Source: Lepidodermella squamata (Eukaryota > Animalia > Gastrotricha). From it: DNA of 64,000 nt. Positions 1,791-30,053 of the stretch are shown one piece after another. The stretch's first letter is position 1. Each line of letters starts with the position of its first letter. The stretch spans positions 558,001-622,000 of the forward strand of contig JBLDXI010000032.1 in assembly GCA_047495785.1 (NCBI GenBank), written 5' to 3'. The notes beneath the pieces were generated by a model. The model saw only the letters and a program-made list of their open reading frames with translations. It was not told where the DNA came from and did not search any database. The position numbers and the translations under genes are program-made.

Positions 1791-1830
1791 GACGACATCG
1801 TAACAGTGACAATCAAATGCCAAGAAACAT

Positions 1831-7182: not shown

Positions 7183-7602
7183 GCAATACACTTAATTTAA
7201 TGTCCTGACTTGTTTAACTTGAACCACAATAAACTGTATAATTGAAAAATATGTCAAGAGAATCACACGACTTATGATTATTATTTGCCTGCGTATATAG
7301 GTGAAGGAGTTTTTCGCTGCTTTATTTATAATTTAATTTATTCACTACCCTATACAGCGTGTTTGCGTGTTCAGCTGTTTGCTGCGATATAAAAATCATC
7401 GATAAACCCGCGCGAAATAACGCTACTGAGAGCTATTACTGCGTGCCTTGACGCGCACACACACACGACGCCGGAAATCGATTTCCGTCGCATTTTTTTC
7501 CCTCAGCACGTCAGGCTACAATTTATTTCGCAGTCTACACACCGCGCTTTTTTCGACCCATTTCTTCTTACTTTGCAAGTTCACCTTTGGACACGCTGAA
7601 AC

Positions 7603-9400: not shown

Positions 9401-10014
9401 TTACGATATTAATTGCAGGCCGGGTTTTGCAAGGTCAAAGTCCACGCTATTGAGACCGTGCAGTTAAAAATGACAGTCAAAAATGCTCCAAAAGCTGTCG
9501 GGCTGTAATTTCAATAATAGTCTGAGAAATCCGGAAAAAATTTGAAAAAAGGCTTAACGTCACAGAATTTCATTAGCTGATTATACTAACACCAACATTT
9601 TCGACGTTTGGCTCGGGTCCAACCCTTTCATAAATTTTCGAGATGCCCGTTCCTCGATTTCGCCATGTCATATCAGGTCAAAAAGGAAGAAGGGGTCACT
9701 ATCTCGGATGGTCACAACTTTCACGCTGGAGATTGCAAGGCTATGCTTTCGAGAAGTTTCCTAGTTATCATTATGCAAATAAGTGGGTCGTGTTATTTGC
9801 TATGCTACGTCGGCCGTTAGGGCTAGAAATTTGCCGGTCATGCCATACAGCGGTGATAGCGGCTTGTTTACACACCGTTTTTTTCCGTTCCTTATCTTTT
9901 TCGACCGACTTCCCAAGCCTTTATAAACCAGCTAGTTCGGGGTTGAAGACCAGTGTCTCTGAATTCGCATTTCGACTAATACTTCTCGCAATAAAGACTT
10001 CATCCCGCAACGCA

Positions 10015-10662
10015 ATGGCTGATCACAAAATCACCCTGCACTACTTCAACGGCCGTGGCCGTGCTGAGTTGGCCCGCTTCCTGTTGGCCTATGTTGGTCG
10101 TGAATACACCGACAAGCGCTACACCATGGAGGAATGGCCGGCGATCAAGGCCAACTTCCCCCTTGGCCAGCTGCCCGTCATCGAGATCCACAAGCCCGAT
10201 GGCACCAGCGAGCACATGACCCAGAGCGCCAGCATTGTCCGCGCTATCGCCTCATGGCACGGCCTCAACGGCAAGACCCCGAAGGAAACCGCCCGTGCTG
10301 ACGAGGCCTTCGAGGCCGCGAAGGAGGTGCTGGAGGCTGGCATGAAGGCTTTCTTCGAGAAGGACGCCGCCAAGAAGGCCGAGCTGACCGAGGCTGCCAA
10401 GCAGATCGCCCACCGCATCTTCACCTTCCTGGAGGCCAAGGCCAAGGCCCACAACGGCAAGAGCGTCGCCAGCGACGAGGCCATCACCTATGCCGACGTC
10501 ACCCTCGGCCTCATCCTTGACAACGCACACAACAACAAGACCAAGGAGGAGATTGATGCCTTCTCGGCCAAGTTCCCCACCATCCATGCTATTGCCAAGT
10601 CTGTCTTGGACAACGCTGGCCTCAAGGCTTACCTTGCCACCCGCCCGGCCACTCCTTTCTAA
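10015..10662 (+). CDS. Intronless, strongly GC3-biased sigma-class-like GST (GST6)
   Basis: MADHKITLHYFNGRGRAE..RPATPF*. TATAAA at ~9922, AATAAA after the stop. Confidence 0.95.
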   Translation: MADHKITLHYFNGRGRAELARFLLAYVGREYTDKRYTMEEWPAIKANFPLGQLPVIEIHKPDGTSEHMTQSASIVRAIASWHGLNGKTPKETARADEAFEAAKEVLEAGMKAFFEKDAAKKAELTEAAKQIAHRIFTFLEAKAKAHNGKSVASDEAITYADVTLGLILDNAHNNKTKEEIDAFSAKFPTIHAIAKSVLDNAGLKAYLATRPATPF

Positions 10663-11092
10663 ACCAATCAGGACGATTTCAACTCCTGAATAAAATTTCT
10701 GTAACCACTTTGATGAAGATCAAATAAAAAGTAGTTCAGAAGTCTTCGTCTCTTTTTGAGAGAGTTTTTAGGTGTCACAAGCCAATTATCAGTTATCATC
10801 ACAACATTAAGATTATACTGATGGGGCTATATACATATGGGTGCAAGCTGTATTCAGGGTTAAAATTGATTTTGTAGTCGGTTCGATCGTCACAGTTCAT
10901 TGCATATTCACGCTTTAGGAAATCTGGGGGGAGCTTTAGGAAATTTCGACACCAAAATATGACTGACAACGTGCTAATCGTCTAGACGCGCAGTCGTCGT
11001 TATGGAAAGAGGGCGAGTCAACATTGCGCGCAGCGATACACGATGAACCTTATCATTATGATTTAACATACTGAGAAAAGCGACCATAAATA

Positions 11093-13423
11093 ATGCGCTT
11101 TGATGCCTTGCTTTTCGCTATATGGTATGTCGCGACATTTCCTGCCATTAGCCAATCGTCGCAGATGACTTTCGAGAAATGGCTCAGCAAGCCTGAGCTG
11201 GATAATTTGCTACCAGCTACGTTGGCGCCATATTTTGACCAGCAAGTTAATTCGAAAACAGAATGCTTCTCTCACTGCATGAAAAATGCGAGTTGCAGTA
11301 GTTTGGCGTGCAGCGAGTTGAAACGCTTGTGCAAGCTGTACAGCCATCCGGGTTCTGGAAAGCCCCTTCCAAAACTGAAGCTAGACCTGGGGCAGGGTCA
11401 CAAAATGTACTATCGCAGTCACTTCTGCCCTCCCGGTTGGATAGCTGACAACGACAGCGACCGGTGTTATCTTCTTCAAAATGAAACGCTATGGCGGCAA
11501 TACTCTTGGAAGGTTTGCGACGAAAACTTTCAATCAGAGCTAGTCACATTCCAAAATGTCGATCAACGACGCCGGTTGTACGAAATTCTCAGGAATAACG
11601 CTCCTTCTAATACGACTAAATGGTGGACTGGTTATGCAGCTTTCGCAGCCAACGTCTGGCCAAGGCCCGTTCAAGAGATCAAAGGCTACATCAAACGCAT
11701 GGGAAATGTTGGCACAGATCTCGTGACTTTGACCAATGTCAAAGGACCCGAAGAATGTGCTAATAAGTGCGATCGAGTCTATCGCGACAGTTGTGTAGCT
11801 TTCACGTTCTACCGACGGGATAACTACTGCGTTTTGAAGTCGGCTTCTTCCAACGCACCGGGCGGATCAGGTGATGTTGATGCTTGGAACTATGAAAAGG
11901 TGCGAGGGCGGCCTGCAGCGCGGCGCGAGAATACGAAAATAAACTCCGCAAGTGTCAATACCTGCTACAGTGGAACCGCGGCTGCTGTGCTTACCAGTCA
12001 GAGATGCTCCGATATGTGTAAGGCAACGCGTGGCAGATGCGTTACCTTTCAATTTCGACCCGCTCCTCTGACGCCAGGTGGCACTTGCTGCCTGTTCTAC
12101 AACTCATTGTTCACATCAAGGGCAGTCGAAGCTGGCACGTTGTTATACGATTTGGTTGAAATTGACAAAGCCCCTTGCATTTTCGGTCAGCGGTATCACG
12201 ACAGTTGTTTAACGATAGCTTATGGCGACTTTCTACCCGCTACGCTTCAAAATGCTCGTTGCTCTGAAATGGGCGGTATTTTGACGGCCCCTATCGATGG
12301 ATCCCAAAAGTATCGACTCATAACTGTCGCCAGTGATCGGCTGGCTAACTTGGGCTTTAGCTTCCCTAATTTCATCATGGACTATGGCGCTATGAACCCC
12401 AGTACCTACCCGAATCCAGCGAATTGGACGACCCAAATTAATAAGCTGTACCTTGCTGGGTCGCCAGCCTATGAACTTTGGCCTTGGAGTGAGCCGCCGA
12501 GTTTGAATTCCGGAGAGTGGCTATGTGGTGCTGGGAAGAACCAGTTTCAGGATTTTGGAGTGGACGTCAGCAATCGAATCCTGTGTGAAATTCCCACATC
12601 TCAGTCTTACCCTCAAAATTGTCGATTCACGACGCCTGGTCGCGAATACAACGGAAGAATGACGAAAACGTCAAGTGGAGCTTTATGCGCTATGTGGAAC
12701 GGGACTGAATACAACTCAGCGGCAAAAAGCTTTCCTGAACTACACGTGTTTCATCGATACTGCAGGAACCCCGACATAGCTCGAATGCCGAAAGGGCCGT
12801 TCTGCATGAGGCAGGACAGCAAAACTACACCTGAATATTGCGACCCGCCCCCGATGTGCCCCGAAACCGATTGGGCACAGGGCCAAGTTTTTGACAACCC
12901 ATCCATTCCTTTTGCAACCATAAGTCCAACTAATGACTCTTATGAGTGGACTACTCAAAAATTTGATTTCAAGGCTAATGGAATCTGCAGCTTGGACATG
13001 AGTAACTGGTGTCCTTATTACTTTGGAGGGAGTTGCTACGTAATATACAAATTGCCAAGATTTCGCGCCGAAGCTAAGGCTATTTGTCAGCAAACTAATT
13101 CTCACCTGTTAACAATTGAAAGTGAAGCCGAACAATTGTACATTAACAGCATAATAATGAGTCAAGGAGCAAAATGGATGGCCTCGTTGTACGGCTATCA
13201 CCTGGGCTTGCAACGGCTCAATCCAAGTGATATGTTCACGACTTGGGATACCGGAACGCCTGTTACCTTTACATTTTACATGGCAAACAAACCGTCAGCT
13301 TCAGCTACGGCGGACTGCGTCTATTTCGGGTATCTTGACACTGTCTATTCCAGCGAGTGGTACGATCAAGGTTGCAGTCTGATTGAGGCGTATCCTATAT
13401 GCGAAATTGAATTGGCTGGTTGA
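11093..13423 (+). CDS. Intronless secreted mosaic protein: PAN/apple x3, C-type lectin-like x3, kringle (copy A)
   Basis: Signal peptide. PAN Cys patterns (ECFSHC..CSS..CKL; ECANKC..CVAFTF..CVLK), kringle (GREYNG..SGALCAMW..YCRNPD..GPFC) and CTLD (SCY..AKAICQ..SHLLTIESEAE..WYDQGC..PICE). Confidence 0.9.
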   Translation: MRFDALLFAIWYVATFPAISQSSQMTFEKWLSKPELDNLLPATLAPYFDQQVNSKTECFSHCMKNASCSSLACSELKRLCKLYSHPGSGKPLPKLKLDLGQGHKMYYRSHFCPPGWIADNDSDRCYLLQNETLWRQYSWKVCDENFQSELVTFQNVDQRRRLYEILRNNAPSNTTKWWTGYAAFAANVWPRPVQEIKGYIKRMGNVGTDLVTLTNVKGPEECANKCDRVYRDSCVAFTFYRRDNYCVLKSASSNAPGGSGDVDAWNYEKVRGRPAARRENTKINSASVNTCYSGTAAAVLTSQRCSDMCKATRGRCVTFQFRPAPLTPGGTCCLFYNSLFTSRAVEAGTLLYDLVEIDKAPCIFGQRYHDSCLTIAYGDFLPATLQNARCSEMGGILTAPIDGSQKYRLITVASDRLANLGFSFPNFIMDYGAMNPSTYPNPANWTTQINKLYLAGSPAYELWPWSEPPSLNSGEWLCGAGKNQFQDFGVDVSNRILCEIPTSQSYPQNCRFTTPGREYNGRMTKTSSGALCAMWNGTEYNSAAKSFPELHVFHRYCRNPDIARMPKGPFCMRQDSKTTPEYCDPPPMCPETDWAQGQVFDNPSIPFATISPTNDSYEWTTQKFDFKANGICSLDMSNWCPYYFGGSCYVIYKLPRFRAEAKAICQQTNSHLLTIESEAEQLYINSIIMSQGAKWMASLYGYHLGLQRLNPSDMFTTWDTGTPVTFTFYMANKPSASATADCVYFGYLDTVYSSEWYDQGCSLIEAYPICEIELAG

Positions 13424-13628
13424 TCCGAACTGAGGCCTTCAGTTGCAATCTGCAATGTCTGCTAATCAGAATGACTGCGAAGTGTAACATAGATTTTCAT
13501 CAGCTCTCTCATTCTCTATGATCTCTCTCTGCACAATAACCTGATACAATTTATCACTATGCCTAGTGAATAAAACATAGTTTTTTTAATTCAGACTCCA
13601 TTATCAGTCATTTTTTTCGAAACCGCAA

Positions 13629-13640
13629 GTCGGTCAAAAA
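13629..13640 (+). promoter_or_regulatory. GTCGGTCAAAA element upstream of GST7, representative of a recurring motif
   Basis: The same 9-mer recurs at 19280, 19529(rc), 20776, 24821, 27472, 27548(rc), 27609, 29183 and 29218, always upstream of a GST. Function is inferred. Confidence 0.65.
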
Positions 13641-13974
13641 CCATGACCCAGATTTAGCTACTAAAGGCATCCGCTCAGAGTGCGCTCTGAATGAATTAAA
13701 CCCCTCTTTTAAAGTAAAATTGCCGCGTGATCCATCACCACGCCGAAAAAAACATCACAAAGGGAGAGATGCTGTATATGCTGTAGGTATACTATGTTTG
13801 CTATTGGTAAACATAGCAGCTAACAGGCACCATTTCTCTATACGAATTGATTTTTTTGCCTGTTTTCACCGACATTGAATAGCGCTCATAAATACCGGGG
13901 GCACTGCCGCTTTTTTTGCCACACCTGCAGCCCATTTTCCTTTTGCTATTGATTGATAAATTTCTCACCGAAAC

Positions 13975-14613
13975 ATGGATAAAATAACACTTCATTACTT
14001 CAACGGTAAAGGACGCGCTGAGCCATCTCGATTTCTGCTCGCCTATGTCGGCAAGGAATACAAAGATCAGCGTTACGCCAGGGAGGACTGGCCAGCTTTC
14101 AAGCCCCAGTGTCCTCTGCAACAGCTGCCAGTTCTAGAATTCACGAACAAAGACGGGAAGTCAGTCATGCTGGCCCAAAGTGCCTCGATTTTCAGAACTC
14201 TGGCTTTATTCTTTGGTTTGAACGGCAAAACCATGGAGCAGCAAGCTCGAGCTGACGAAGCATTCGAAGCCCAACGAGAGATACTGGAGGCAAATGCCAA
14301 GGTTCTCTTCGAAAAAGACCCCGCAAAGAAAGCTGAACTTCAGAAGGCAGCTCAGGACATTGGCGCTCGTGTTTGGCCATTTTTGGAGAAACGAGCCAAG
14401 GAGAGCGGTGGAAAAGGCCTGGTGGCGGCGGATCACGTGACCTACCCGGACATTGTTCTCGGATTTATGTGGGATAACTTCCATGACCGGCCCAAGGATG
14501 AAATCGACGCTTTTTCCGCCAAATTTCCAACTATTTCCGATATCGGCAAGAAAATTTTGGACAATCCTGGTATCAAAGCCTACCTTGCCAAGCGTCCTAA
14601 AACGGAGTTCTGA
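13975..14613 (+). CDS. Intronless sigma-class-like GST (GST7)
   Basis: Complete 212 aa ORF with LHYFNGKGRAE, QQLP and QSA. Confidence 0.95.
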   Translation: MDKITLHYFNGKGRAEPSRFLLAYVGKEYKDQRYAREDWPAFKPQCPLQQLPVLEFTNKDGKSVMLAQSASIFRTLALFFGLNGKTMEQQARADEAFEAQREILEANAKVLFEKDPAKKAELQKAAQDIGARVWPFLEKRAKESGGKGLVAADHVTYPDIVLGFMWDNFHDRPKDEIDAFSAKFPTISDIGKKILDNPGIKAYLAKRPKTEF

Positions 14614-15607
14614 AGATAATAAATGATATTATTATACATACCTGCCTATATAAAAATATTGACTCGAGCTTTGTCTTATTTGTTGAATACTCCGGTATTT
14701 CTATTCCTTTTCGTATGGTTGAAAATAAATCACGCCTTGTCGCGATTTTATTTTATTCTTTACTAATAATCTACAGAAGTGCCAAGTCTGTTTCGGACAT
14801 TAAATGCTTACCTCAATTTTCTTCAACTGCGCCGCGTTCTGAAAGTGAGGGCCAGGCCTTATACTGAAAATCGCGGCGAATTTCGACCCATTTAGTTGGA
14901 TTTTGTTTATTAAATCGTGAACATTCCAGGAATTGGCATTTTCGGCCAGGTTACTCATTCAAAATTTGGTTTCACTTAAAAGCAAGACTTTTGTTTAGAA
15001 TTTCTCGCAAATATTGATGGACCGGGTAGTTCTAAACAACCTGAGCAAACGAGTATTCCGCAACAAAAATAAATCAGGGACTTCAAAAGAGCAGGCAAAA
15101 AATCAATAAAGCAGTCTGAAGATCTTGACAAAAAATGGTGACAAAAAAGACAGATGACTATTTCGAGATCCCCCTTCACAAACATTTCGAGCTCATTTGT
15201 CAATTTTTACCCGCTCAAATGCGTTTAGATTTTCTAATTCGCCAAAACTCACGATTGTTCACATTTTGTTGCTCTTTGATCGCTGCAATTCGTAGCCGAA
15301 ACCGTTGATTCTGCGCGAGACAACTTGGAAACTCCGGTCAGACTCTTTTCAGCGATGCGAGAACCAACGCAGCGTCTTCCCAACTTTGATCGCACCGTCT
15401 CTCATGTAATAAATGTTCATAAATGTTCGCCCGGCCACTCCTTTCTAAACCAATCAGGACGATTTCAACTCCTGAATAAAATTCTGTAACCACTTTGATG
15501 AACGTCAAATAAAAAGTAGTTCAGAAGTCTTCGTCTCTTTTTGATCTTACAATGCTATTGAGATAGTATTTAGGTATCACCAACCATTTATCATCAGAAT
15601 ATTAAAA

Positions 15608-16289
15608 CCCTTTCATGGCGGAATTTTTCATCTGCGGGAGAAAAAATATTTTACGGCAGTTCCAGAGGTCTTCGAAGGCCCTGATCACGATTTTGAAACC
15701 CGGTTGTCTATTTATCTATCACCGTTAAGGCTGTAAAAAACTGCCCGAAATCGCCCTATCCGCCTGGCTGATTTCAGGCGATCTTTCGAACACCCAAATT
15801 TCCGTGTCAGGCGTCTTCAGCTTTGGAATTTTAGATTCTTAATTACTCTCACGAAAATCCCCAAGAGGCTCAGCATTCAGATCTGAATTCTGCTTTTCCA
15901 GTTTTCCTCCCGACAGTCACGTACTCCGCCTGTATTAAAGTCTGGGCGGACGAATTCGGCCGGTTTGATTGAATTTCAATAGCGTCGTCATTTTTAATTT
16001 CCAACTGAAAAAAATTGACACAGAGGCCAATGAGACTATGGCGCATAAAAAATGATCAGAATGAACCTTTCAAGTTGAAAAAATCGAAATTTCAATCTCA
16101 GGTAGACTATTTTCGAATTGCTAGTATGTCCTGACCATGCAAGGTAATAGTTTCCAGGTCTTAAAGCCTTGTAGCCAACATCGAAAAGCAACATTCCTCA
16201 AAGGGCGATCAAGAATTCATCAAATTTAATTTTCTGCGAATTTTCGAAATCGTCGAAATTCCGAAATCGTCCTTCCCGCCGTGAAACGG
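15608..16289. mobile_element. Non-autonomous TIR element, possibly piggyBac-like
   Basis: Left end CCCTTTCATGGCGGAA versus reverse complement of the right end CCGTTTCACGGCGGGAA. TTAA/TAA-like flanks. Absent from duplicate copy A. Confidence 0.55.
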
Positions 16290-16304
16290 TAACATTGCAT
16301 CATG

Positions 16305-16480
16305 CCGCGGGGTTGGCGACAGAACGACTTGAATAGAAGCAATTGGCGCAATGCATTTGATGCAAAGAAAAAACTGGCGTTTTAATAATGATAAGGCACG
16401 CGACTGACTTGGCCGAGATGCAGAAAGTTAGTGTTTACGTCTTTTGTTTCTATTCTCGGCGTTCTGTCGCCCACCCCGCG
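16305..16480. mobile_element. MITE with 21-bp terminal inverted repeats
   Basis: CGCGGGGTTGGCGACAGAACG ... CGTTCTGTCGCCCACCCCGCG (1 mismatch). Absent from copy A. Confidence 0.7.
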
Positions 16481-16750
16481 ATATTATACTCATGGTGCGT
16501 ATGCGTGCAGGCTTTATTCAAAGTTTAATCGATTCATGCTCACGCTTTAGGAAATGTCCGGCTGCAACTTGATGAAGTTCCGATACAATAATATGACTGA
16601 CAGCTTCACTGTGCACGCAGTACGATCGTCTTGGGCGCCGTTGTGGAAGACACCTGGTAACGTGCCAATATCGCACACAGCGATACAACTAACCCTAGCC
16701 GACTGAGCAGACTATCGCTTTTCTTTTTCCTGGGAAAATCGACCATAGCA

Positions 16751-19096
16751 ATGCTCATCGATGCCTTTATTTCATCTATATTGCTGCTCGTGGCATCTCC
16801 TACCATTTGTCAATCGTCGATGATTACTTTCGAGAAATGGCTTTCCAAGCCTGAGTTGGATAATTTGCTGCCGGCTACTTTGATGCCATACTTTGACCAG
16901 CAAGTTAATTCGAAAACAGAATGCTTTTCTCACTGCACGAAGAATGCGAGTTGCAGTAGTTTGGCTTACAGCGAGTTGAAACGCTTGTGCAAGCTGTACA
17001 GTCATCCGGGTTCTGCAAAACCGCTGCCAAAACTGAAGCTAGACTTGGGGCAGGGTCACAAAATGTACTATCGCAGTCACTTCTGCCCACCTGGTTGGAT
17101 AGCGGACAACGATAGCGATCGGTGTTATCTTCTTCAAAACGAAACGCTCTGGCGTCAATACTCCTGGAAGGCTTGCGACGAAAACTTTCAATCAGAGCTA
17201 GTCACTTTCCAAAATATTGATCAACGCCGCCGACTGTACGAAATTCTCAAGAATAACGCGCCTTCTAATACGACTAAATGGTGGACTGGTTATGCAGCTT
17301 TCGCAGCCAACGTCTGGCCAAGGCCCGTTCAAGAGATTAAAGGCTACATCAAACGCATGGGAAATGTTGGCTTAGATCTCGTGACGTTGACCAATATCAA
17401 AGGACCCGAGGAATGTGCTAATAAGTGCGATCGAGTCTATCGCGACAGCTGTGTTGCTTTCACGTTCTACCGACGAGATAACTACTGCGTTTTGAAGTCG
17501 GCTTCTTCAAACTCACCGGGCGGATCGGGTGATGTTGATGCTTGGAACTATGAAAAAGTGCGAGGACGGCCTGCAGCGCGGCGTGAGAATACAAAAATTA
17601 ACTCCGCAAATGTCAATAACTGCTACAGTGGAACCACGGATGCTGTGCTTACCCTTCAGAGATGCGCCGATATGTGTAAGGCAACGCGTGGCAGATGCGT
17701 GACCTTTCAATTTCGACCCGCTCCTCTGGCGCCTGGTGGAACTTGCTGCCTGTTCTACGAATCATTGTTCAACTCAAGATTGCCCGAAGTTGGAACGTAT
17801 GTCTACGATTTGGTTGAAATTAACAACCGCCCTTGCATTTTCGGCCAGCGGTATCACGACAGTTGTTTAACGATAGCTTATGGCGACTTTCTACCCGCTA
17901 CGCTTCAAAATGCTCGTTGCTCTGAAATGGGCGGTATTTTGACGGCCCCTATCGATGGATCCCAAAAGTATCGACTCATAACTGTCGCCAGTGATCGGCT
18001 GGCTAACTTGGGTTTTAGCTACCCTAATTTCATTATGGACTATGGCGCTATGAACCCCAGTACCTACCCGAATCCAGCAAATTGGACGACCCAAATTAAC
18101 AAGCTGTACCTTGCTGGGTCGCCAGCCTATGAACTTTGGCCTTGGAGTGAGCCGCCGAGTTTGAATTCCGGAGAGTGGCTATGTGGTGCTGGGAAGAACC
18201 AGTTTCAGGATTTTGGAGTGGACGTCAGCAATCGAATCCTGTGTGAAATTCCCACATCTCAGTCTTACCCTCAAAACTGTCGATTCACGCCATCAGGTCG
18301 CGAATACAACGGAAGAATGACGAAAACGTCAAGTGGAGCTTTATGCGCTATGTGGAACGGGACTGAATACAACTCAGCGGCAAAAAGCTTTCCTGAACTA
18401 CACGTGTTTCATCGATACTGCAGGAACCCCGACATAGCTCGGATGCCGAAAGGACCTTTCTGCATGAGGCAGGACAGCAAAACTACGCCTGAATACTGCG
18501 ACCTGCCCCCGATGTGCCCCGAAACAGATTGGGCGCAGGGCCAAGTTTTTGACAGCCCATCCATTCCGTTTGCAACCATAAGTCCAACTAATGACTCTTA
18601 TGAGTGGACTACTCAAAAATTTGATTTCAAGGCTAACGGAATCTGCAGCTTGGACATGAGTAACTGGTGTCCTTATTACTTTGGAGGGAGTTGCTACGTA
18701 ATATACAAATTGCCAAGATTTCGCGCCGAAGCTAAGGCTATTTGTCAGCAAACTAATTCTCACCTGTTAACAATTGAAAGTGAAGCCGAACAATTGTACA
18801 TTAACAGCATAATAATGAGTCAAGGAGCAAAATGGATGGCCTCGTTGTACGGCTATCACCTGGGCTTGCAACGGCTCAATCCAAGTGATATGTTCACGAC
18901 TTGGGATACCGGAACTCCTGTTACCTTCACGTTTTACTTGGCAGACAGACCATATCCGTTCAGCAAGCCAATTTCCTCTCAAGTGGGCTGCATCTACTTC
19001 GGGTATCATGACTCTATCTATTCCAGCGAGTGGTACGATGACAGTTGCAGTCTGGTTGAGGCGTATCCTATATGTGAAATTGAATTGGCTGGTTGA
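16751..19096 (+). CDS. Intronless secreted PAN/C-type lectin/kringle mosaic protein (copy B)
   Basis: 781 aa ORF, near-identical to 11093-13423. Confidence 0.9.
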   Translation: MLIDAFISSILLLVASPTICQSSMITFEKWLSKPELDNLLPATLMPYFDQQVNSKTECFSHCTKNASCSSLAYSELKRLCKLYSHPGSAKPLPKLKLDLGQGHKMYYRSHFCPPGWIADNDSDRCYLLQNETLWRQYSWKACDENFQSELVTFQNIDQRRRLYEILKNNAPSNTTKWWTGYAAFAANVWPRPVQEIKGYIKRMGNVGLDLVTLTNIKGPEECANKCDRVYRDSCVAFTFYRRDNYCVLKSASSNSPGGSGDVDAWNYEKVRGRPAARRENTKINSANVNNCYSGTTDAVLTLQRCADMCKATRGRCVTFQFRPAPLAPGGTCCLFYESLFNSRLPEVGTYVYDLVEINNRPCIFGQRYHDSCLTIAYGDFLPATLQNARCSEMGGILTAPIDGSQKYRLITVASDRLANLGFSYPNFIMDYGAMNPSTYPNPANWTTQINKLYLAGSPAYELWPWSEPPSLNSGEWLCGAGKNQFQDFGVDVSNRILCEIPTSQSYPQNCRFTPSGREYNGRMTKTSSGALCAMWNGTEYNSAAKSFPELHVFHRYCRNPDIARMPKGPFCMRQDSKTTPEYCDLPPMCPETDWAQGQVFDSPSIPFATISPTNDSYEWTTQKFDFKANGICSLDMSNWCPYYFGGSCYVIYKLPRFRAEAKAICQQTNSHLLTIESEAEQLYINSIIMSQGAKWMASLYGYHLGLQRLNPSDMFTTWDTGTPVTFTFYLADRPYPFSKPISSQVGCIYFGYHDSIYSSEWYDDSCSLVEAYPICEIELAG

Positions 19097-19630
19097 TACA
19101 AACTGAGGCCATCAGTCGCAATGTGCAAGGCCTAGCAGGGATGACCGCTAAGTAAAAAATTTTATTATATCATTTTATCTCTCATTCTGTTCTATATAAT
19201 CTCTATGTGTATAATAAATTTCCCATTTTTTTTTGAACTTCGGATTCCTGATGGAAGAATATTTTTTTTTAAACCGTAAGTCGGTCAAAAAACACAGGAA
19301 TCATATTCAGCTATCTAAGGTCTCCGCTCAGATCGACTAGGCTCTGAATGAATTGAACTCCTCTTTTGAAGTAAAATCGCCCCGTGATCCACGTGGCGAA
19401 AAAACATCAAAAGAAGAAATGAAAGCAGGTGCTATGATATGCTGCTACGAGCATGCTATGTGTGCTACTGGTGAACATTGCAGCTAGTACGCCCTATGTC
19501 TTTATACGAATTGATTTTTTTGCCTATTTTGACCGACATTGAATAGCGCTCATAAATACCTGCACTGCCGCTTTTTTTGACACACCTGCAGCTCATTTTC
19601 CTTTTGCGATTGATTGATGCTCAACAAAAC

Positions 19631-19706
19631 ATGGATAAGGATAGCAAAATTACCTTACATTACTTCAACGGCAAAGGTCGAGCTGAGTTATCTCGACTAC
19701 TACTCG
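19631..19706 (+). pseudogene. GST pseudogene: 5' stub only, body deleted
   Basis: MDKDSKITLHYFNGKGRAELSRLLL is fused directly to sequence matching 14743 onward, which lies downstream of GST7. Confidence 0.88.
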
Positions 19707-21010
19707 ATTTTATTTTATTCTTTACTAATAATCTACAGAAGTGCCAAGTCTGTTTCGGACATTAAATGCTTACCTCAATTTTCTTCAACTGCGCCGCGTT
19801 CTGAAAGTGAGGGCCAGGCCTTATACTGAAAACCGCGGCGAATTTCGACCTATTTAGTTGGATTCTGTTTATTAAATCGTGAACATTCCAGGAAATTAAG
19901 ATTAAGATTTTCCAATTCGCCAAAACTCACGCATTTTGTTGCTCTTTGATCGCTGCAATTCGTAGCCGAAACCGTTGATTTTGCGCGGGACAACTTGGAA
20001 ACTCCGGTCAGACTCTTTTCAGCGATGCGAGAACCAACGTAGCATCTTCCCAACTTTGATCGCACCGTCTCTCATGTTATAAAAAAAGTTCATTTCTACC
20101 AGTTTCCGTGATTATATGATGTAACGAACAAGTATTCGGTTGTTTTTCATTTGGACACATGACAGTCAGCCAAAAAAATATCGAAATGTTGGGGTGATGA
20201 AACGAAGGCGAAATAATTACGTAATTAAATTTCCAAAATGTTCGAAAAGTTGAAAGCGTAAAAGAATTGTCTAATCACCAGTATTTCTCACTTTCCTTTC
20301 CAGTGATGAAGCATCTTTGGGAATTCTGAAATCGCATGAAAAAAACTTATAACATGATAAAAGTTGACCTTAGAAATTCGTGAGTAAAATCACATCCGCC
20401 AAATGAAAATCGCGATGAATCATCTCGGCATACAGGTGTCAGATTTATCTTACTTATTCATTTATGCTCGCATGAGAAAAAATCCGGAATAAACAATGCA
20501 GCGAAAAGGGTTTATATTTATGAGGGCTAATGAGCTTTTTATTTGTCGCTAGCTTGTGTTTTTACCTGGTCTCGCTGATGTTACGTCCATTGCAATACAA
20601 ATTCGTGCCAGTCGAGTGCATAAGAAAATGATGATAATTAATTTTCGAGGTTAAAATGCAAAAAAATCATTAATCACCAAAAATATCCGCCAAAAGCTTT
20701 ATGATGTAGCGTTCAATGAAGAAAATATCCCCGTTATTTCAATAGGCTTGTTAAAATATTCGCGTGACAAAGAAAGTCGGTCAAAAATAAGGTCATAAAA
20801 CGGAATTCAGGTGCTCTGATGCTATGGTTGCTGGCATAATATTATGTATTGCGCACCAGTCCTTGATATAAAGGAATCGATTCTTTCCCGCTATGACCTA
20901 CATAAAATAGCGTATAAATACTGGGGCGCTACCACATTTTCGCCATTCGTCCTACTTTCAGTGCAGTTTTCGCCTTTTATTATCAAGTTTAAGAAATTTC
21001 AGCCAGAACC

Positions 21011-21655
21011 ATGAATAAGGATAGCAAAATCACGCTGCATTACTTCGATGCCAAGGGCCGTGCTGAGCCATCTCGATTTCTGCTCGCCTACGTCGGCAAG
21101 GAGTACAAAGATCAGCGACATTCTAAGGAAGAATGGCCGACCTTCAAGCCACAGTGCCCCCTGCAGCAAATTCCTGTTCTCGAATTAACGGGCAAAGACG
21201 GCAAATCAGTCATGCTGGCCCAGAGCGCCTCAATTCTCCGAACTCTGGCTACAATGTTCGGTTTGAACGGCAAAACCCTGGAACAACAAGCTCGAGCTGA
21301 CGAAGCATTCGAAGCCCAGAAGGAGATGATGGAGGCAACCGCCAAAGTCCTCTTCGAAAAAGACCCGGCAAAGAAAGCCGAACTCCAGAAAGCTGTAGCA
21401 GATACGGGTGCTCGAGTTTGGCCGTACTTAGAGAAGCGTGCTAAGGAGAACAATGGCAAAGGTCTGGTAGCGGATCACGTGACCTACCCTGACATTGTCC
21501 AAGCTTTAATGTGGGACAACTTTCAAGCTCACCCGAAGGAAGCTGTTGATGGCTTCTATGCCAAGTTTCCAACTATTTGCGATATTGGCAAGAAGATACT
21601 GGAAAATCCTGGCATCAAAGCGCATCTAGCCAACCGTCCTAAAACGGAGTTCTGA
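21011..21655 (+). CDS. Intronless sigma-class-like GST (GST9)
   Basis: Complete 214 aa ORF, close paralog of GST7. TATAAA at ~20913. Confidence 0.95.
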   Translation: MNKDSKITLHYFDAKGRAEPSRFLLAYVGKEYKDQRHSKEEWPTFKPQCPLQQIPVLELTGKDGKSVMLAQSASILRTLATMFGLNGKTLEQQARADEAFEAQKEMMEATAKVLFEKDPAKKAELQKAVADTGARVWPYLEKRAKENNGKGLVADHVTYPDIVQALMWDNFQAHPKEAVDGFYAKFPTICDIGKKILENPGIKAHLANRPKTEF

Positions 21656-22050
21656 AGACCTGCCTAAATGACTCGAATTTTTCTAATATTTACTGTACTA
21701 TAGTCCTTTTTGTGTCTTAAAATTGTTAATAAATCATAGCTTTTTTTCGTTATTTTTTCATGATTTTGACCACGATTCATAATCCACAGACCTGTCTTTT
21801 ACCGCGGCGACAATAGTCATAGGTGTTCGCTCCATTGTTTACCCAGAATGAAAAAAGGGCACTACGAACACAAAAAGCTGACCCGCTATCCCTGGAAAAA
21901 AGCTCGAGATGACTATGGCGTTGTGCAAATACTTGAGCTAGAAAATTTGTCACCTGATTCGTCATCTTGCAAGCTATAAATACGGGTAGCGTTTCGCCTT
22001 AAGATGTAATAATCATATTCGATTGTTCTTTTTGAATCTCGCAAAAAATC

Positions 22051-22787
22051 ATGTCGTTCCTCCCGAAAGGTCCACCAGGCAAGGACAGGCCCAGCAAGGT
22101 TAGACTTGTCGATTTTCACGTCCGAGGCCGGTCTGAAATCATCCGCTGGATCTTGTCCTACGGCAAGGCGCATTGGGAAGAAACCCGTCTAAGCCCTGAA
22201 GATTGGAAGGCGATGAAAGCTAGTAAGTTTCCATCCATCAGCTTCTCAACTTCCAAGTTGTAATTATAATCAAATTTACAGTCGCCCCGATTGGTCAGGT
22301 TCCGTTCTTGGAGGTCGAACTCGACGGTAAGAAGAGGACCTTCGCCCAATCTTCGACTTTGGTCCGAGCTGTCGCTTATTGGTACGATTTAGTCCCGAAG
22401 AGCTCTCTAGAGGCTATCCACGCCGATGAAACCCTGGAAATTCTGAAAGACCTAATCGAACATGGAATTCGCGCCCATTTCGAATCGGACGAGGCTCGTA
22501 AACTTGTTGCTACGACCTTTTTCAAGGAGGAACTCCTGCCACGAACCTTGGCCTACTTGGAAAGGAAACTGCAGGACAATGGCGGGAAATTTATGGCTGG
22601 AAAGGAGACGACGTATGCCGATATCGCCGTGTCAGTAGTTGTCGATGGCTTGATCCAACTGCCGTTCATCAATTTCGACGTCAATGTCAAGGCTGTTTAT
22701 CCTGGACTTGTTGGCGTTGCCATGAAAGTTCGCGATCACCCGGAAATCAAGAAATGGCTCGAAAAGCGCCCGCCGACTCCGATTTGA
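22051..22787 (+). CDS. Divergent GST (GST10) lacking the catalytic Tyr, 2 exons
   Basis: VRLVDFHVRGRSE, then an intron (~22223-22281), then APIGQVP, QSSTL, ..RPPTPI*. Confidence 0.88.
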
Positions 22788-23424
22788 ACTTCTCATTCGA
22801 AGCACGTTTCTTTAGTTAGGAATTAGGAATTTTAATGTTTGATTGATCCTCAAGTTGATCTAAGGGCAGCTGAAATAAAATTTGAGTTTTAGGAAATAAA
22901 TGGTCTTCTGAAATTTTCTATTATTGCTCCAGATCAACGTTGATTTTTTCAATGTTCGGATTGGAAGGGTGCCTAATCAATAATTCCACCGGGATCCCAG
23001 TTTTCACATCAGAATTTTTCCTCAATTTGAAAAAAATAATTAATCAATAATTCGAGCTATAAAAAATATTTTTCATTTTTGTTATCCTATTTTATATATT
23101 TATTTTATTTTTATTTATCTATAAAATCCTATATCCTTAATTGAAAGCTCGCCATTTTTCAATTTGCCACCTGGTTACTGGTTAATATGATATTCCACAG
23201 ACAACAAGTTTATGTTTATCCTCTAGTTTATTACCTGCGTCCAGCTCGGTCAAAATCGCGCATTTATGATCGACTGCATAGGTCGCATCGATCGCCAGTT
23301 GCCGGGCGACGTTGACGCGCGCAACTTGTCCTAGCCGCCCTAGGGCGGATACTCACTTCGCTGTGGTACACTCTCATTTGCTTATTTTTATTGTTGTTTT
23401 CGCTGCAATTCTAAACTATACACT

Positions 23425-24271
23425 ATGGGAGCAGCCTGCAGTGGCGCCAGCAGTACGGCTAACTGTCCGAAGGGCAAGTACAAGATAATTTACTTCAACG
23501 TTCCCGGGCGAGCTGAGCCAATTCGTTGGATATTAGCTTATAAATTCGTAATAATAAAAACTCAGAAATTGTCAGCGCATGACCTAGTTTTTTTTTATAT
23601 GATCTCAGGCTACCGATTTCGATGACGAGCGTGTTGAACCGGCCAACTGGCCTGCCTTGAAGCCGAAAATGCCGATGGGTCAGCTTCCTGTTCTTGAAGT
23701 ACCGACAGATTCAGGCGAAACTATTCAAATATGTCAAACAACAGCAATAATCCGGCATTTAGCTCGACTTTTCGGTATTGCTGGGAAAACTCCTGAACAA
23801 ATCGCAAGGGCTGATGAAGCTTACGAAAGGTTTTTTCAACCTGATTTTTATCATTTGAAGCTATAAAAAAGATTTTCAGTTTGAAGGACCTCTCCCATGG
23901 CCTCTACGAGTACAATCTGGAGAAGGATGATAACATGAAATTTGCGGTGCTGATGGGATTTATTGGCGGGTCCTTGCCGCGACTTCTGGGTTACTTCGAA
24001 AAACGGATCAAAGAAAACGGCGGTAAAAACCTTACCGGCGGAAGTGGGGTGATTTTTTCAGAAAATTTGTAATTAATTTTTAAATAAATTTGGCTCATTT
24101 TAGTTAACTTATGCTGATATCTGTCTCGGGGCTGCTTATGAAAACCTCGTTAAAACGCTGCCGTTAGTCGATTTGAGTGACTATCCCAACTTCATCAAGC
24201 TCGGCAAACAAATCGCAGAAGTGGCAAATATCAAAGCTTACCTGAATAAGAGGCCGATTTCAAAACGTTAA
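23425..24271 (+). CDS. GST (GST11) with N-terminal MGAACS extension, 4 exons
   Basis: IIYFNVPGRAEP, MPMGQLP, QTTAI. Three GT-AG introns. Ends KRPISKR*. Confidence 0.87.
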
Positions 24272-24984
24272 TAGATCAATTTTTTTAGCGTGGATATTTT
24301 TTGCTGAAAGTGGTCTTTTGTTGTACCCCTCACCTCGATAATAAATTACTCTGATTATTGAGCTTCGGTGTTTTTTTACATTTTTTACATTTCTGCTGCT
24401 AATTGTGAACGCCACGTATTAAAAAATTTCAATTAATTATATTTCGATTAAATTTCCCATTAATAAGGGTTGGAATTAAAATCAGTTAAAAGTTAGCCTT
24501 CAAAATGCTCACAATGAAACATTTCTAATGCGTAGAAAAAACCGCGGGGAGGATTCACAAATGGGCATTAGGAAGTCTGGTATTAAAACCCAGGTTATAT
24601 TCCTAAATATAACTCCTAAATCCTCTTAAATAAAACAAAAATAAAAACCGCTCGGGGGTTGAATTGAGTTAATGAAAGGTTCAATACCTGTCTTTTCGGT
24701 CAGGCTCGATTTCTAAAATTAGTACATGCTATTAAATTTCAGTCAAGAATCTATCGTATTGATTTAGCATGAATAAGGTTCAGTTTTTTTAAGCGAGGAA
24801 TTGAGCTTTTATGAATGCAAGTCGGTCAAAAATTTCGTTGTAAAGAAAATTCTAGAATAAATATGAGGAGGTAAACATGCGCCACGCCCGATCAATACAC
24901 GACCGCACTATTTAAGCCGTCATCTTTTCTTCCAGCCACGACTAACCACATTTTTCCGCTTGAAGAATCTGCCCGAAATATAAC

Positions 24985-25669
24985 ATGGCTGCTGGAAAAT
25001 ACAAGCTGCACTACTTCAACGGCGGTGGCCGCGCTGAGGCGATTCGATGGACCCTGGCCTACGCCAAAGTCGACTTTGAGGATCAGCGATACCAAAGGGA
25101 CCAATGGCCGGCTGTGAAAGAGAGCATGCCGCTCCACCAACTTCCTGTTCTCGAGTTCAACGACGGCAAGCAGACGCATAAATTCGTCCAAAGCGCAGCG
25201 ATCATCAAATTTGTGGGCAACAACGTCGGGCTCGGTGGCAAAAATCCTGTTCATGCGGCCAAAATCGACGAGGCCTACGAAAGCCTTCGCGAATTTCAAG
25301 AAACTTTGTTCCGCGCTATGTTTGAGAAGGACGAAGCTCGCAAGGGTGAATTGATGGGAAAGGTTATTAAGGAAGAGTTCCCCAGAATTTTCGGCTTTCT
25401 CGAAAAGCGCGTCAAAGAAAATGGCGGCAAAAACTTGGCCGGCGGTGATGGGGTAAGATTAGCGAAAAATCAAAATAATTTATTAATAGTACATCAAATT
25501 TTAGCACTCCTATGCGGACACCTTTTTGGCAGCTTTGTTCGAGATGGTAGCTGCTCACAAGGTTCTGGACTTCAGCCCGTTTCCCGGTATTTCAGCTGTC
25601 GCTAAAGCTGTGGCGGAAAATGCCGGAGTGAAAGCCTACCTTGCCAAGCGTCCCAAGGCTGATTTTTAA
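24985..25669 (+). CDS. Sigma-class-like GST (GST12), 2 exons
   Basis: KYKLHYFNGGGRAE. Second exon HSYADT..KRPKADF*. Confidence 0.93.
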
Positions 25670-26236
25670 ATGCGTGCCAATCATCGAATTTGCACCTACC
25701 CGAGAATAGCTGGGAAGAATTGATAAAGAGACCTGCCTATAAATTATTAATTATTTGTAGATTTTCTTGTTTCTTTCAAGCATTAAAAATAAAAGCGGTT
25801 ACTAGATACGCACAATAGAGTTCGAGGTCATAATATTAACAATCAAGAAAGGATAGCTGAAAATGGAAATACATGTGGCGTCGGGACAACTTGCCGAAGA
25901 AAAAATGCGCATTTTATACCTTCACATGAATATTTTTGAACCAGCTTAATCTTAGCGGTACGCTAATTGGTCTTGTATTTATTTCGGCGTGTCAAAATTC
26001 GTATTTTTGGCTTTTGGGGACGGTTTTTTGAATTTTTTGCCATCTTCAAAGAGCATATAGATAAGTACTAGGAGGCGCAAAAATACCTGCTGATTTTTAA
26101 TCGATAATTTCAGACAAACTAGATTTCTAAATTTAGCACAAGCCATAAAATGTCTGCCGCACAGGTCAACGCAATCGATCGCGTTTATTTAGCATGGATA
26201 AGTGCAGTTTTTTAGCGAGCAGTTGAGTTATTATGA

Positions 26237-26915
26237 ATGCGGGTCGGTCGAAAGCTGTCTTACATCGGTCAAGCCGGGCGGGGAGAGGCTATCCGCTGGA
26301 CATTTGCCTATGCCAAGATCGATTATGAAGACCACCGTTACAAATTCGAAGAATGGCCTGCTGCTAAGCCGTCAATGCCGCTTCAACAGCTGCCGGTTCT
26401 CGAGTTCACCGAAGATGGTAAAACTTTGAAATTAAGCCAAAGCGCTACTATCATCAAATTCGTCGCTAATACCGCCGGTCTTTCGGGGAAAAATCCTAAG
26501 GAAGTCGCCAAGGCCGATGAAGCCTATGAGTGTGCTCGCGAATTCCAAGACGCTTACTTCAAAGCCGTGTCTGAGAAGGACGAAGAAAAGAAGAAGGACG
26601 CGATGGCTAAGGTCGCCAAGAATGACTTCCCGAGGGTTTTCAACTTCCTCGAGAAGCGTATCAGCGAAAACGGCGGCAAAAACGTAGCTGGTGGCGATGG
26701 GGTAAACAAATTTTAATTATTTATTTCTACATTTTATATCGATTTTTTAGTACACGTATGCTGATATTTTCCTGGCTTGCCTTTACGATATGATGAGCCA
26801 ACGCAATTATTTTGATTTCGCTCCGTATCCAGGCGTTGCCGGTGTTGCCAAGGCGATTGCTGAGAACGAGGGAGTCAAATCTCATCTTGTCAAGCGTCCA
26901 AAGGGCGATTTCTAA
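26237..26915 (+). CDS. Sigma-class-like GST (GST13) with rearranged 5' end; possibly a pseudogene
   Basis: Intact GST body and second exon. The start region derives from upstream promoter sequence. Confidence 0.75.
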
Positions 26916-27469
26916 CTCTGGAGATGCTTTCAAATTGAACTCGAATTAATTGTGAATAAAATGGAGTTTAATTTCGGAAAAATCGTGTTTTTCAGGGTTA
27001 ACCAATTTTTGTAGTCCCAAAAGATTCACCTAGAAGCTGTAAAATGTTGTTATCAATCACGGCAAATCGGTGATTTTAACCAGGCAAGTAATCGCAGAGG
27101 AAAATGATGTGAGCAACTTATTCGGCGGCCCGGTGTGAATATTCAAATGAGAGTAAAATTTTTCTTTACATAAAAAAAATAACCTGAAATTTGTTGCCAT
27201 GAAAAAGGCCGTTGTCGGTTTTTTTATTTGTTTTTTTTTAACCTTGATAGTCGAATTCCGGTTGTCCCTTCTGCGACCTTTATTATTACTTCCATGGATC
27301 ATCAACTGAGAAAATAATTTGAAGCCGAAATTCCAAGATCAGATTATTATCCCTTAACTTTTATCTCAGCAAATAATCAGTGGCTACGCTACGTGACCTA
27401 ATTTTTTAGTGCTAAAAGCAATTTATTGAGGTTAAACTCAAATTGCTAAAATTAGCGCAGCCTTACTGA

Positions 27470-27620
27470 ATGTCGGTCAAGAATCAAAGAAGGACGGCCA
27501 TTCCCCGTACATAAAACCGCATCTTATTCATGCTGAAACAAAGAATCTTGACCGACATTTTTTACATGCCGGGGCTATTTTTAGAAATCCAGGCGAATAC
27601 TACAGCATGTCGGTCAAAAT
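27470..27620. promoter_or_regulatory. Cluster of three ATGTCGGTCAA elements upstream of GST14, two forming an inverted pair
   Basis: ATGTCGGTCAAGAATC (27470), GAATCTTGACCGACAT (27543) and ATGTCGGTCAAAA (27607). Confidence 0.65.
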
Positions 27621-27787
27621 TCTATACCTGAAAAGAAACTTCAGAATAACTTAGTAGGTAAATCACGTACCACACCCGATCAATACGCATGGCAGCAATG
27701 CTATTTAAGCCGGCGAATTTCTCCCATAACCACAGCTAACCAAATTTCTTTCTGCAAATTATCTGAAAATATTCCTAAAGCTCTCTA

Positions 27788-28473
27788 ATGGCTACTGGTA
27801 AGTACAAGCTGCACTACTTCAACGCAACTGGCCGCGGCGAGGCGATTCGATGGACCCTAGCCTACGGCAAGGCTGACTTTGAAGATCAGCGATACATCGG
27901 CGAGCAGTGGCCGGGTGTGAAGGAAAGCATGCCGCTTCAACAACTGCCAGTCCTCGAATACAACGACGGCAAGCAGACGCATAAACTCGCCCAAAGCGCG
28001 GCGATCATCAAATTTGTGGGCGCCAATCTCGGGCTAGGTGGCAAAAATGCGATTCACACCGCAAAAATCGACGAAGCGTATGAAAGTCTACGCGAATTCA
28101 ACGAATCGATGCTGCTCGCTAGATTTGAAAAGGACGAAGCTCGCAAGGTTGAAAAGATGGGCAAACTTGTTAAGGAGGACTTCCCAAGAATTTTCGGATT
28201 TCTCGAAAAGCGCGTCAAAGAAAATGGCGGCAAAAACCTAGCAGGCGGTGATGGGGTAAGATTTAAGGAAAAATAAAAATAATTTATTAATACATGAAAT
28301 TTCAGCACTCCTATGCGGACACATTCTTGGCGGCTTTGTACGAGATGGCAGTGGCTAACAATAAGGCTCTGGACTTCAGCCCGTTTCCCGGTGTTTCAGC
28401 TGTTGCTAAAGCTGTGGCGGAAAATGCCGGAGTGAAAGCCTACCTTGCCAAGCGTCCGAAGGGTGATTTTTAA
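27788..28473 (+). CDS. Sigma-class-like GST (GST14), 2 exons
   Basis: Close paralog of GST12. Ends KRPKGDF*. Confidence 0.93.
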
Positions 28474-28643
28474 CAACAGCCAATTGTCTGAATGGCTGGA
28501 GATCAAAACCATTACATACCGAACTTTGAATATTTTACATTCAAGTATTCACCTATTCACATTTGCATAATTAAATGATAACCTATTTATTTTGAATAAA
28601 ATTTGGTTTTGATTCTAATATGGACATTCTTTTAGGGTCTTAC

Positions 28644-28935
28644 TCTTAGAGGAACCAAAATTGCCTGTTAGCGGAACCAAATATTGGAATTTTCAATGGG
28701 CCTAAAGCTACTTTTTGAAGCTTTCAAACTTGTCATGATTTATCAGGTTAATTTGAAATAAATCATTAAATTCAGCGTAAAGTTCTGTAAAAGACACATT
28801 CTTCACTATAGAATTCATGCATTGCCTCAATTTCGTAGAAATATTCAAAAAGCGGCCTTTTGCTTACCATAAATTAGGTTCCGCAAAATGCCGATATGGT
28901 TTTTCGCTACAGGCAAATTGGGTTCCTCTAAAAGA
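28644..28935. mobile_element. MITE with ~50-bp imperfect terminal inverted repeats (GGAACC family)
   Basis: TCTTAGAGGAACCAAAATTGCCTGTTAGCGGAACCAAATATTGG versus reverse complement of CCGATATGGTTTTTCGCTACAGGCAAATTGGGTTCCTCTAAAAGA. Confidence 0.7.
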
Positions 28936-29366
28936 TATTCTGATTCTTTTACAATTCATTGCCCGAAAATTATATGAACGAGATAAATTTGATTCAACAA
29001 ATTTTTGATCTGGTTTCTAACCGCCCGCCCGCCCGCTACAGAACAGCAATAAAGTCACGCGAATAAAAAGCATTGTTCTCGGACTAATAATCGTAAAAAA
29101 GCCATTAATTCATTCTCGACAATCTTGTTATTTGGCATCATTTTTTAAGCATCTATTCCTTCTTCATAAGCATCCATTTAATGTCGGTCAAAACATTTGA
29201 AATAGTAGCGGTAGACAGTCGGTCAAAAATTGTTATTGATTGCTTTCACGCATTCCGTGCGCCGCTTTCTCCTTTATTACTATTTAAGAGTTTTTTACCT
29301 GTGCTACACAGCGTATATAAAGCTGCGAAATAGAGCCTTATTTTTGTGCAAAGTAACTAGTTTAAA

Positions 29367-30053
29367 ATGACCATTGGCAATTTCAAGGTTCACTACTTCG
29401 CCGGATCAGGCCGTGCTGAAGCCATTCGTTGGACGTTGGCCTACGCCAAGGCCGATTTCGAAGACGTTCGTTTCACCTATGAGCAATGGCCTGCAATCAA
29501 GCCGAAAATGCCGACGGGAACTGTTCCAGTTCTCGAATTCAGCGACGGCAAGCAGACGCATTTTCTAGGTCAAAGTGCTGCGATTATCAAATTTCTGGCG
29601 AATCACTTCGGTTTGGTTGGAAAATCGCCGATCGAAAGCGCCAAAGCTGAAGAAGCTTATGAAAGTGCTCGCGAATTTCAGGAATTTGTCGGCTCGATCT
29701 ACGGCGAAAAGGACGAAGCTAGGAAGGTCCAGTTGCGCGAGAAACTCAGCACAGAACTTTTGCCTCGTCTTTTCGGTTTTATCGAGAAGCGAATCAAGGA
29801 AAATAACGGCAAGAATCTGGCTGGCGGCGATGGGGTATAAATTATTTTAAGAATTTCCTTTTCGATGTAATTTAATTCCGTCATTTTGCAGTACACCTAT
29901 GCCGATATTTATGTTGCTGCTTTGGTGGAAATGATCAGCGAGGGCAAGTTTGCCGATTTCAGCCCTTATCCTGGCGTGGTTGCTCTATCGAAGGCTGTTG
30001 CTGAGGTTGATGGCATCAAGGCCTACATTGCCAAGCGTCCGAAAACGAAATGA
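29367..30053 (+). CDS. Sigma-class-like GST (GST15), 2 exons
   Basis: VHYFAGSGRAE and QSAAI. Second exon YTYADI..KRPKTK*. Confidence 0.93.

Follow-up and report, generated by a model that had tools for sequence, protein, structure and literature searches.

A nine-letter word, GTCGGTCAA, recurs upstream of glutathione S-transferase (GST) genes in a stretch of the genome of the gastrotrich Lepidodermella squamata (contig JBLDXI010000032.1, positions 558,001 to 622,000; the whole 64,000-nucleotide stretch is hereafter called the window). Our analysis indicates that the word belongs to a real and conserved element upstream of the promoter, which is probably a transcription-factor site serving two clades of these genes. 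Within each clade, the motif is conserved as the top block of the promoter, on a par with the TATA box. The word would form the invariant core of an upstream promoter element of about 14-17 bp, roughly A-W-GTCGGTCAA-R-A-W, and a sequence-specific transcription factor would most likely bind it. Because the word is non-palindromic and has no constant partner half-site, this factor may bind as a monomer. It would co-regulate these GST paralogues.

Distribution of the word in the GST array

Translated searches characterized the window as a piece of a small-intron animal genome carrying 16 sigma-class GST genes (G1-G16), all on the plus strand. A tree of first exons contained two supported clades, (G5,(G6,(G7,G9))) and (G13,(G15,(G12,G14))), and did not resolve the two motif-bearing clades as sisters. 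The array and the approximate starts of the genes are as follows.

9643..30050, plus strand: sigma-class GST array G6-G15, in which the motif carriers are the clades G6/G7/G9 (plus the fragment G8) and G12-G15
Plus strand, approximate starts: G1 1098, G2 4648, G3 5535, G4 6429, G5 7640, G6 10045, G7 13975, G8 19631
Plus strand, approximate starts: G9 21011, G10 22051, G11 23425, G12 24985, G13 26237, G14 27788, G15 29367, G16 43840

The counts of the word given here cover both strands of the window. Ten exact copies were present, whereas dinucleotide shuffles predicted 0.32 and none of 100 shuffles contained more than 4. Of the commonest non-trivial 9-mers in the window, it was the sole one not rich in A/T. 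Its inner 7-mer, GTCGGTC, occurred 12 times, all 12 upstream of GSTs within G6-G15. Allowing up to one mismatch gave 28 matches versus 11.7 expected. Several of the additional one-mismatch matches were coding coincidences: those at 44044 and 26264 encode the GST peptide G-Q, those at 33068 and 36870 fall inside UGT coding sequence, and outside the GST array such matches were mostly of this kind. No copy was found near the three UGT genes, G1-G5, G10, G16 or any other gene of the window. The individual sites, together with the core promoter of G12, are listed below.

9901..9909, minus strand: variant GTCGGTCGA, proximal copy of G6 (ATG at about 10045), 19 nt start to start before a TATA-like TTTATAAACC at 9920
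13629..13637, plus strand: exact copy, distal in G7 (ATG at 13975, -346), with TGACCC 7 nt downstream, at 13644
13865..13873, minus strand: variant GTCGGTGAA, proximal in G7, 22 nt before the TATA box (13887)
19280..19288, plus strand: exact copy, distal in G8 (a truncated duplicate of G7)
19529..19537, minus strand: exact copy, proximal in G8, 22 nt before the TATA box (19551)
20776..20784, plus strand: exact copy, distal in G9 (ATG at 21011, -235), with AGGTCA 6 nt downstream, at 20790
20893..20901, minus strand: G9 site homologous to the proximal copy; the minus strand reads GTAGGTCAT, with canonical AGGTCA replacing CGGTCA
23245..23253, plus strand: variant CTCGGTCAA, upstream of G11 (ATG at 23425, 180 nt ahead); with the preceding G it fits GCnnnGTCA
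24738..24751, plus strand: decayed distal copy TTCAGTCAAGAATC in the G12 promoter, aligning with the first, intact copy of G14
24821..24829, plus strand: exact copy in G12, -119 to -111 from the mapped transcription start
24908..24940, plus strand: core promoter of G12, comprising the TATA box CTATTTAAGCC (24908-24918) and the 5' end of a transcript (24940; SMART oligo, cDNA contig)
26243..26251, plus strand: variant GTCGGTCGA in G13, where this assembly has a deletion between the motif region and about codon 12
27472..27480, plus strand: exact copy 1 of G14 (ATG at 27788, -316), inside the 17-nt unit AATGTCGGTCAAGAATC
27548..27556, minus strand: exact copy 2 of G14, inverted, forming 17-nt inverted repeats with copies 1 and 3
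27609..27617, plus strand: exact copy 3 of G14, 92 nt before the TATA box (27701), aligning with the copies of G12, G13 and G15
29183..29191, plus strand: exact copy 1 of G15 (ATG at 29367, -184)
29218..29226, plus strand: exact copy 2 of G15, 35 nt after copy 1; the cDNA contig of G15 starts at 29235

The copies lie at -102 to -351 from the ATG, in both orientations and singly or in twos and threes; the exception is 26243, at the start of the 5'-deleted G13. They occupy short spacers of 600-900 bp between co-oriented genes. These data agree with a preliminary description of the same DNA in the coordinates and strands of all ten exact copies, in their placement within about 350 bp of a GST start and in the local multiplication at G14 (three copies) and G15 (two). 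That description also listed four one-mismatch copies, all of which exist; the two at 23245 and 26243 on the plus strand were correctly placed, and the two on the minus strand are at 9901-9909 rather than 9897 and at 13865-13873 rather than 13863.

Conservation and duplication of the motif

In the alignment of the G6-G9 promoters, the best-kept block of 12 columns was the reverse-oriented proximal copy (TCGACCGAC, TTCACCGAC, TTGACCGAC and ATGACCTAC in order), and a longer invariant run was found in the TATA core only. The distance from this copy to the TATA box was 19-22 nt (start to start) in all four genes, and G7-G9 carried an additional forward copy farther upstream. In G5, the sister of the G6-G9 clade, positions 7480-7500 read TCGACCCAT opposite TCGACCGAC of G6, which looks like a decayed proximal copy.

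The second clade has a different arrangement, with a forward copy about 60-95 nt before the TATA box and extra copies in G14 and G15. The three copies of G14 share a common 17-nt unit, AATGTCGGTCAAGAWTC, in both orientations. Only 33 of the 403 columns in the G12-G15 promoter alignment were invariant; the longest invariant run was GTCGGTC, the next was AAA, and all other runs were of at most 2 columns. The promoter flanks have diverged to about 52% column identity around an invariant core. Two further words in these promoters are candidate promoter elements: a block of 12 nt, CCCGATCAATAC, which is the same in G12 (24887-24898) and G14 (27675-27686) and in both lies between motif and TATA box, and a MEF2-like word, CTAAAWTTAG (compare YTAWWWWTAR), kept farther upstream in G12, G13 and G14.

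Between clades, promoter alignment with blastn-short recovered the 15-16-nt motif alone when G12 was compared with G7, with G9 and with G15, in keeping with the earlier statement that the flanks of different subfamilies do not align. Within clades, some copies are inherited by duplication, as had also been noted: the promoters of G7 and G8 are 88-90% identical, and G12 and G13 share alignable promoter flanks. G7 and G8 are parts of a tandemly duplicated unit consisting of a lectin-kringle gene and a GST (11093-14613 and 16751 to about 19720), in which G8 is a GST stump of about 25 codons (19631-19714) preceded by a complete copy of the G7 promoter. When lineages rather than copies were counted, the exact 9-mer was kept in at least seven, versus 0.32 expected. 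Duplication explains the recurrence of the motif partly, not wholly.

Transcription start, expression and copy number

Contigs of run X1 skip GT..AG introns of 49-57 nt (25451-25504, 26700-26750 and 29833-29891), and at 24940 one of them breaks off into the tail of a SMART template-switch oligo; on these two grounds, X1 is cDNA. Transcription of G12 therefore starts at 24940. Seen from this position, the T of the TATA box (24908-24918) is 31 nt upstream and the ATG 45 nt downstream. Since the G12 copy lies 119 nt upstream of this start, it is part of the upstream DNA and not of the mRNA or the core promoter. A core-promoter reading of the word (TATA or Inr-like) was rejected on this distance and on the occurrence of copies in both orientations at -102 to -351. 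One unexplained case for this rejection is the cDNA contig of G15, which begins at 29235, 9 nt past the second copy and upstream of two TATA boxes, and carries 22 unaligned letters. The contig start at 29235 may mark an alternative start farther upstream.

Judged by contig depth, G12, G13 and G15 seem to be expressed and G14 hardly at all, with the limit that contigs cannot prove absence. The results bear out the earlier view of the word as a genuine promoter element that is not random and that paralogues have conserved. The word lies upstream of the mapped start, is independent of orientation and is in places multiplied, as is typical of a transcription-factor site.

X2 DNA covered the bins of the G12 and G14 copies at depths of 76 and 81 and the bin with both G15 copies at 105, and most other bins were at about 65-110. 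The preliminary description had named the presence of the word inside a dispersed repeat as a finding that would refute it; at G12-G15, X2 depth is at or near single-copy. A dispersed repeat was thus rejected for G12-G15 on these values, against up to 3918 in a repeat nearby, and on the unrelated flanks of the two clades. Between G14 and G15, the segment 28548-29099 had an X2 depth of 723-3918 versus about 80, with many loose ends and joints, which marks it as a high-copy repeat or mobile element. An X2 contig over 26272-27936 differed from the window by 26 substitutions, at least 23 of them left of 27392 and at most 3 in the 545 nt holding the G14 copies, a distribution that we regard as weak evidence.

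Resemblance to known elements

The consensus of the ten copies has A at -7 (9/10), G at -4 (7/10), A at -2 (9/10) and A or T at -1 (10/10), followed by GTCGGTCAA and then by A/G, A (10/10) and A/T. Among the consensus sequences compared, the closest likeness is to the extended half-sites of monomeric nuclear receptors, such as W-A-W-N-T-R-GGTCA of ROR/Rev-erb/HR3, AAAGGTCA of NGFI-B and TCAAGGTCA of SF-1/ERR. Like these sites, the motif has a single non-palindromic GGTCA core and an A/T-rich 5' extension ending in T before the half-site (A-W-G-T before CGGTCA), and it occurs in either orientation upstream of promoters. In addition, the homologous proximal site of G9 reads the canonical GTAGGTCA. 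The motif differs from them in the first base of the half-site, which is C where known receptors prefer A or G, and in its 3' A-run, which has no counterpart in known sites. The half-site RGGTCA was not found in the exact copies, as all ten contain CGGTCA, and AGGTCA was found in the proximal site of G9 only.

Elements bound by xenobiotic receptors (PXR/CAR on DR3, DR4 and ER6, direct and everted repeats; insect HR96; nematode NHR-8 and NHR-86) offer a parallel as an idea, being receptor sites in the promoters of clustered detoxification genes, and receptor-like genes lie 22 kb off in the same island. Unlike the GST element, however, they consist of paired half-sites. The second half-sites reported earlier near 13631 and 20778 do exist, as TGACCC at 13644 and AGGTCA at 20790; the first was lost in the duplicate G8, the second is unique to G9, and neither is kept in paralogues. 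A paired reading (direct or inverted repeat) was accordingly rejected, as partner sites are not conserved.

The antioxidant response element (ARE) of CNC/Nrf2 and small Maf, TGACnnnGC, is the classic GST-promoter element, and the motif shares its GTCA/TGAC half-site. However, the defining GC is CA or CT in every exact copy (TGAC-CGA-CA or -CT on the reverse strand), and a regular-expression scan matched the ARE core only at the G11 variant (23244-23252), by chance of the flank. The core of the AhR xenobiotic response element (XRE), GCGTG, is not in the motif, and separate CACGC words at 24883 and 29247 lie outside it. The earlier statement that the word is neither an ARE nor an XRE thus stood when motif copies and flanks were checked, apart from this one variant. 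The 5' part of the motif, AATGTC, resembles the start of the SKN-1 site (WWTRTCAT), whose TCAT core is absent. Readings as ARE, XRE and SKN-1 site were rejected because the letters of the motif copies do not fit them. The plant DRE/CRT core (CCGAC) and W-box (TTGACC) both occur within the reverse strand TTGACCGAC, a likeness of letters only; the families that read them, AP2/ERF and WRKY, are not known in animals.

In literature searches, the 9-mer and its reverse complement turned up only in primers, in bacterial operators and in a paper on plant WRKY, and searches for CGGTCA with "nuclear receptor" and "half-site" yielded only incidental vertebrate elements.

Which factor may read the element

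Among the factor classes considered, a nuclear receptor bound to the extended half-site A-W-G-T plus CGGTCA, possibly with an altered P-box, would be the most likely on sequence resemblance, and we propose it tentatively. The nuclear-receptor link and the "dedicated regulator" suggested in the preliminary description are both putative, coming from likeness of sequence.

A more specific version points to the neighbourhood of the array, where two divergent nuclear-receptor-like genes are located.

51417-52707 and 55527-56709, minus strand: two divergent nuclear-receptor-like genes, with a first finger of the form C-x2-C-x13-C-x2-C and the P-box CDPCKK

In these genes the second finger is lengthened, with C-x6-C and C-x10-C spacing, and a 57-nt intron follows right after the P-box lysine. 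As judged from resemblance and proximity, they are candidate regulators of the GST genes. In the searched text of a review of receptors with two DNA-binding domains, the P-boxes are given as CEACKK and CLPCKS, and a term search of that text did not return "response element" (PMC10497141). The GST element could be the response element of a lineage-specific receptor whose P-box has been rebuilt, such as those of the CDPCKK pair at a distance of 22 kb, although we consider this identification unlikely. If it were true, the altered reading head of the receptor would be matched on the DNA side by the replacement of AGGTCA with CGGTCA. It would also provide the first known target sequence for a receptor lineage related to the two-domain receptors, and a worked example of a receptor family and a cis-element co-diverging while controlling a private set of GSTs. 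Two one-mismatch variants of the word, at 57114 (minus) and 57176 (plus), lie upstream of the second receptor-like gene and are within chance expectation.

Weighing the alternatives

The element may also be functional and read by a protein other than a receptor, such as a tandem C2H2 zinc-finger protein, a bZIP factor of CNC type using GTCA, or a domesticated transposase-finger protein, and we regard this as quite possible. The conserved span of 14-17 bp, with its invariant A two bases after the core and its A at -7, exceeds the usual site of a monomeric receptor; the lack of a constant second half-site and the C at the first half-site base point the same way, as does the match of the neighbouring receptor-like genes to Pfam zf-C4, which reaches only E=0.003, below the cut-off. 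On the other hand, no exact copy contains the ARE core expected of a CNC-type site (the G11 variant alone does), and none of the other consensus sequences compared fits better than the extended half-site of receptors.

A different view is that the word is a functionless leftover, an ancestral promoter word spread by tandem duplication and gene conversion. Every carrier is indeed a tandem paralogue, flanks can be aligned between G7 and G8 and between G12 and G13, and the pseudogene G8 retains exact copies. Passive inheritance nevertheless seems improbable, given that the core is invariant between flanks of about 52% column identity, that the promoters of the two clades are otherwise unrelated and hold the word at different positions and in different orientations, that copies were gained in G14 and G15, and that the exact word persists in at least seven copy lineages against the 0.32 expected.

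Even less likely is an architectural role, in which the element would act as a boundary or insulator separating packed tandem genes and not as a gene-specific activator site. The location of the copies in 600-900 bp spacers of co-oriented genes, in either orientation and sometimes in multiples, would suit such a role, but equally tight spacers at G2-G5, at G9/G10 and among the UGT genes have no copies, and the fixed distance of 19-22 nt (start to start) to the TATA box in the G6-G9 clade points to promoter function. Least likely of all is that a small mobile element inserted near these genes and left the copies as its ends or fragments, for example the terminal repeat of a miniature inverted-repeat transposable element, for although the G14 copies form 17-nt inverted repeats 48-57 nt apart and the spacer from G14 to G15 contains a high-copy repeat, the G12, G14 and G15 copies show no raised depth (76, 81 and 105 versus up to 3918), most copies are single and without a matching second arm, their positions are conserved relative to the TATA box, and no copies occur elsewhere in the window.

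Several observations also weigh against our preferred reading of the word as a transcription-factor site of two GST clades. The count of copies is partly inherited, as seen in the near-identity (88-90%) of the G7 and G8 promoters, and the truncated pseudogene G8 has an exact proximal copy where that of the intact G7 differs by one base. The element is missing from seven of the 16 GSTs (G1-G5, G10 and G16) and from all UGT genes of the island, and G14, with three copies, has almost no cDNA. The word was absent from all five sigma-GST promoters of a distant relative (metagenome contigs L001 and L002), and the single exact copy found there, in reverse orientation (TTGACCGACAT), lies at L001 7905-7913, 365 nt after the last GST and at the end of the contig. 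With regard to a receptor in particular, the first base of the half-site is C in 13 of the 14 copies. Canonical nuclear receptors do not prefer C at this position, nor do receptors usually contact a 3' A-run like the one conserved here.

Some of these observations also bear on the name given to the element. The label "detoxification response element", proposed in the preliminary description, is not supported: the word is missing from the three UGTs and from 7 of the 16 GSTs in the island, and the gene with most copies, G14, has next to no cDNA. From the five promoters of the relative without the word, it follows that the element is not an old, general feature of sigma-GST promoters.

If GTCGGTCAA is a real regulator site, it would offer a handle on how a block of GST genes is switched in a little-studied small invertebrate, and a bait for the factor. 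As a near-half-site with a systematic A-to-C change, it is also a concrete sequence with which atypical nuclear receptors can be tested. If it is an ordinary paralogue-specific promoter motif, it would be useful for annotating GST promoters and unsurprising.

Distant relatives and neighbouring genes

In protein collections, searched with single exons, the closest match of the GSTs was 44% identical and of metagenomic origin, and the best relatives, at 40-44% identity, are on metagenome contigs L001-L003. L001 carries four sigma GSTs (41% identity) with tiny introns, and L002 carries one. The gene to which the L001 copy at 7905 would belong lies beyond the end of that contig. A scan of metagenomes with the GST alignment found no relative, and word searches gave no match for either the lectin-kringle protein or exon 1 of G12.

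Two copies of a PAN-kringle-C-lectin gene sit among the GSTs, and the lectin-kringle protein had no match in protein collections. Beyond the GST array, the window contains the three UGT genes, the two divergent nuclear-receptor-like genes and ankyrin genes.

In the assembly, G13 is 5'-truncated, its motif region joining directly to about codon 12 (26237-26275). An X1 cDNA contig has 157 differing letters before 26272, which encode a normal G13 N-terminus (GKYKLHYFNG). An X2 DNA contig also begins at 26272, and left of this position both X1 and X2 differ from the window. The truncation of G13 is probably a deletion allele or an assembly collapse.

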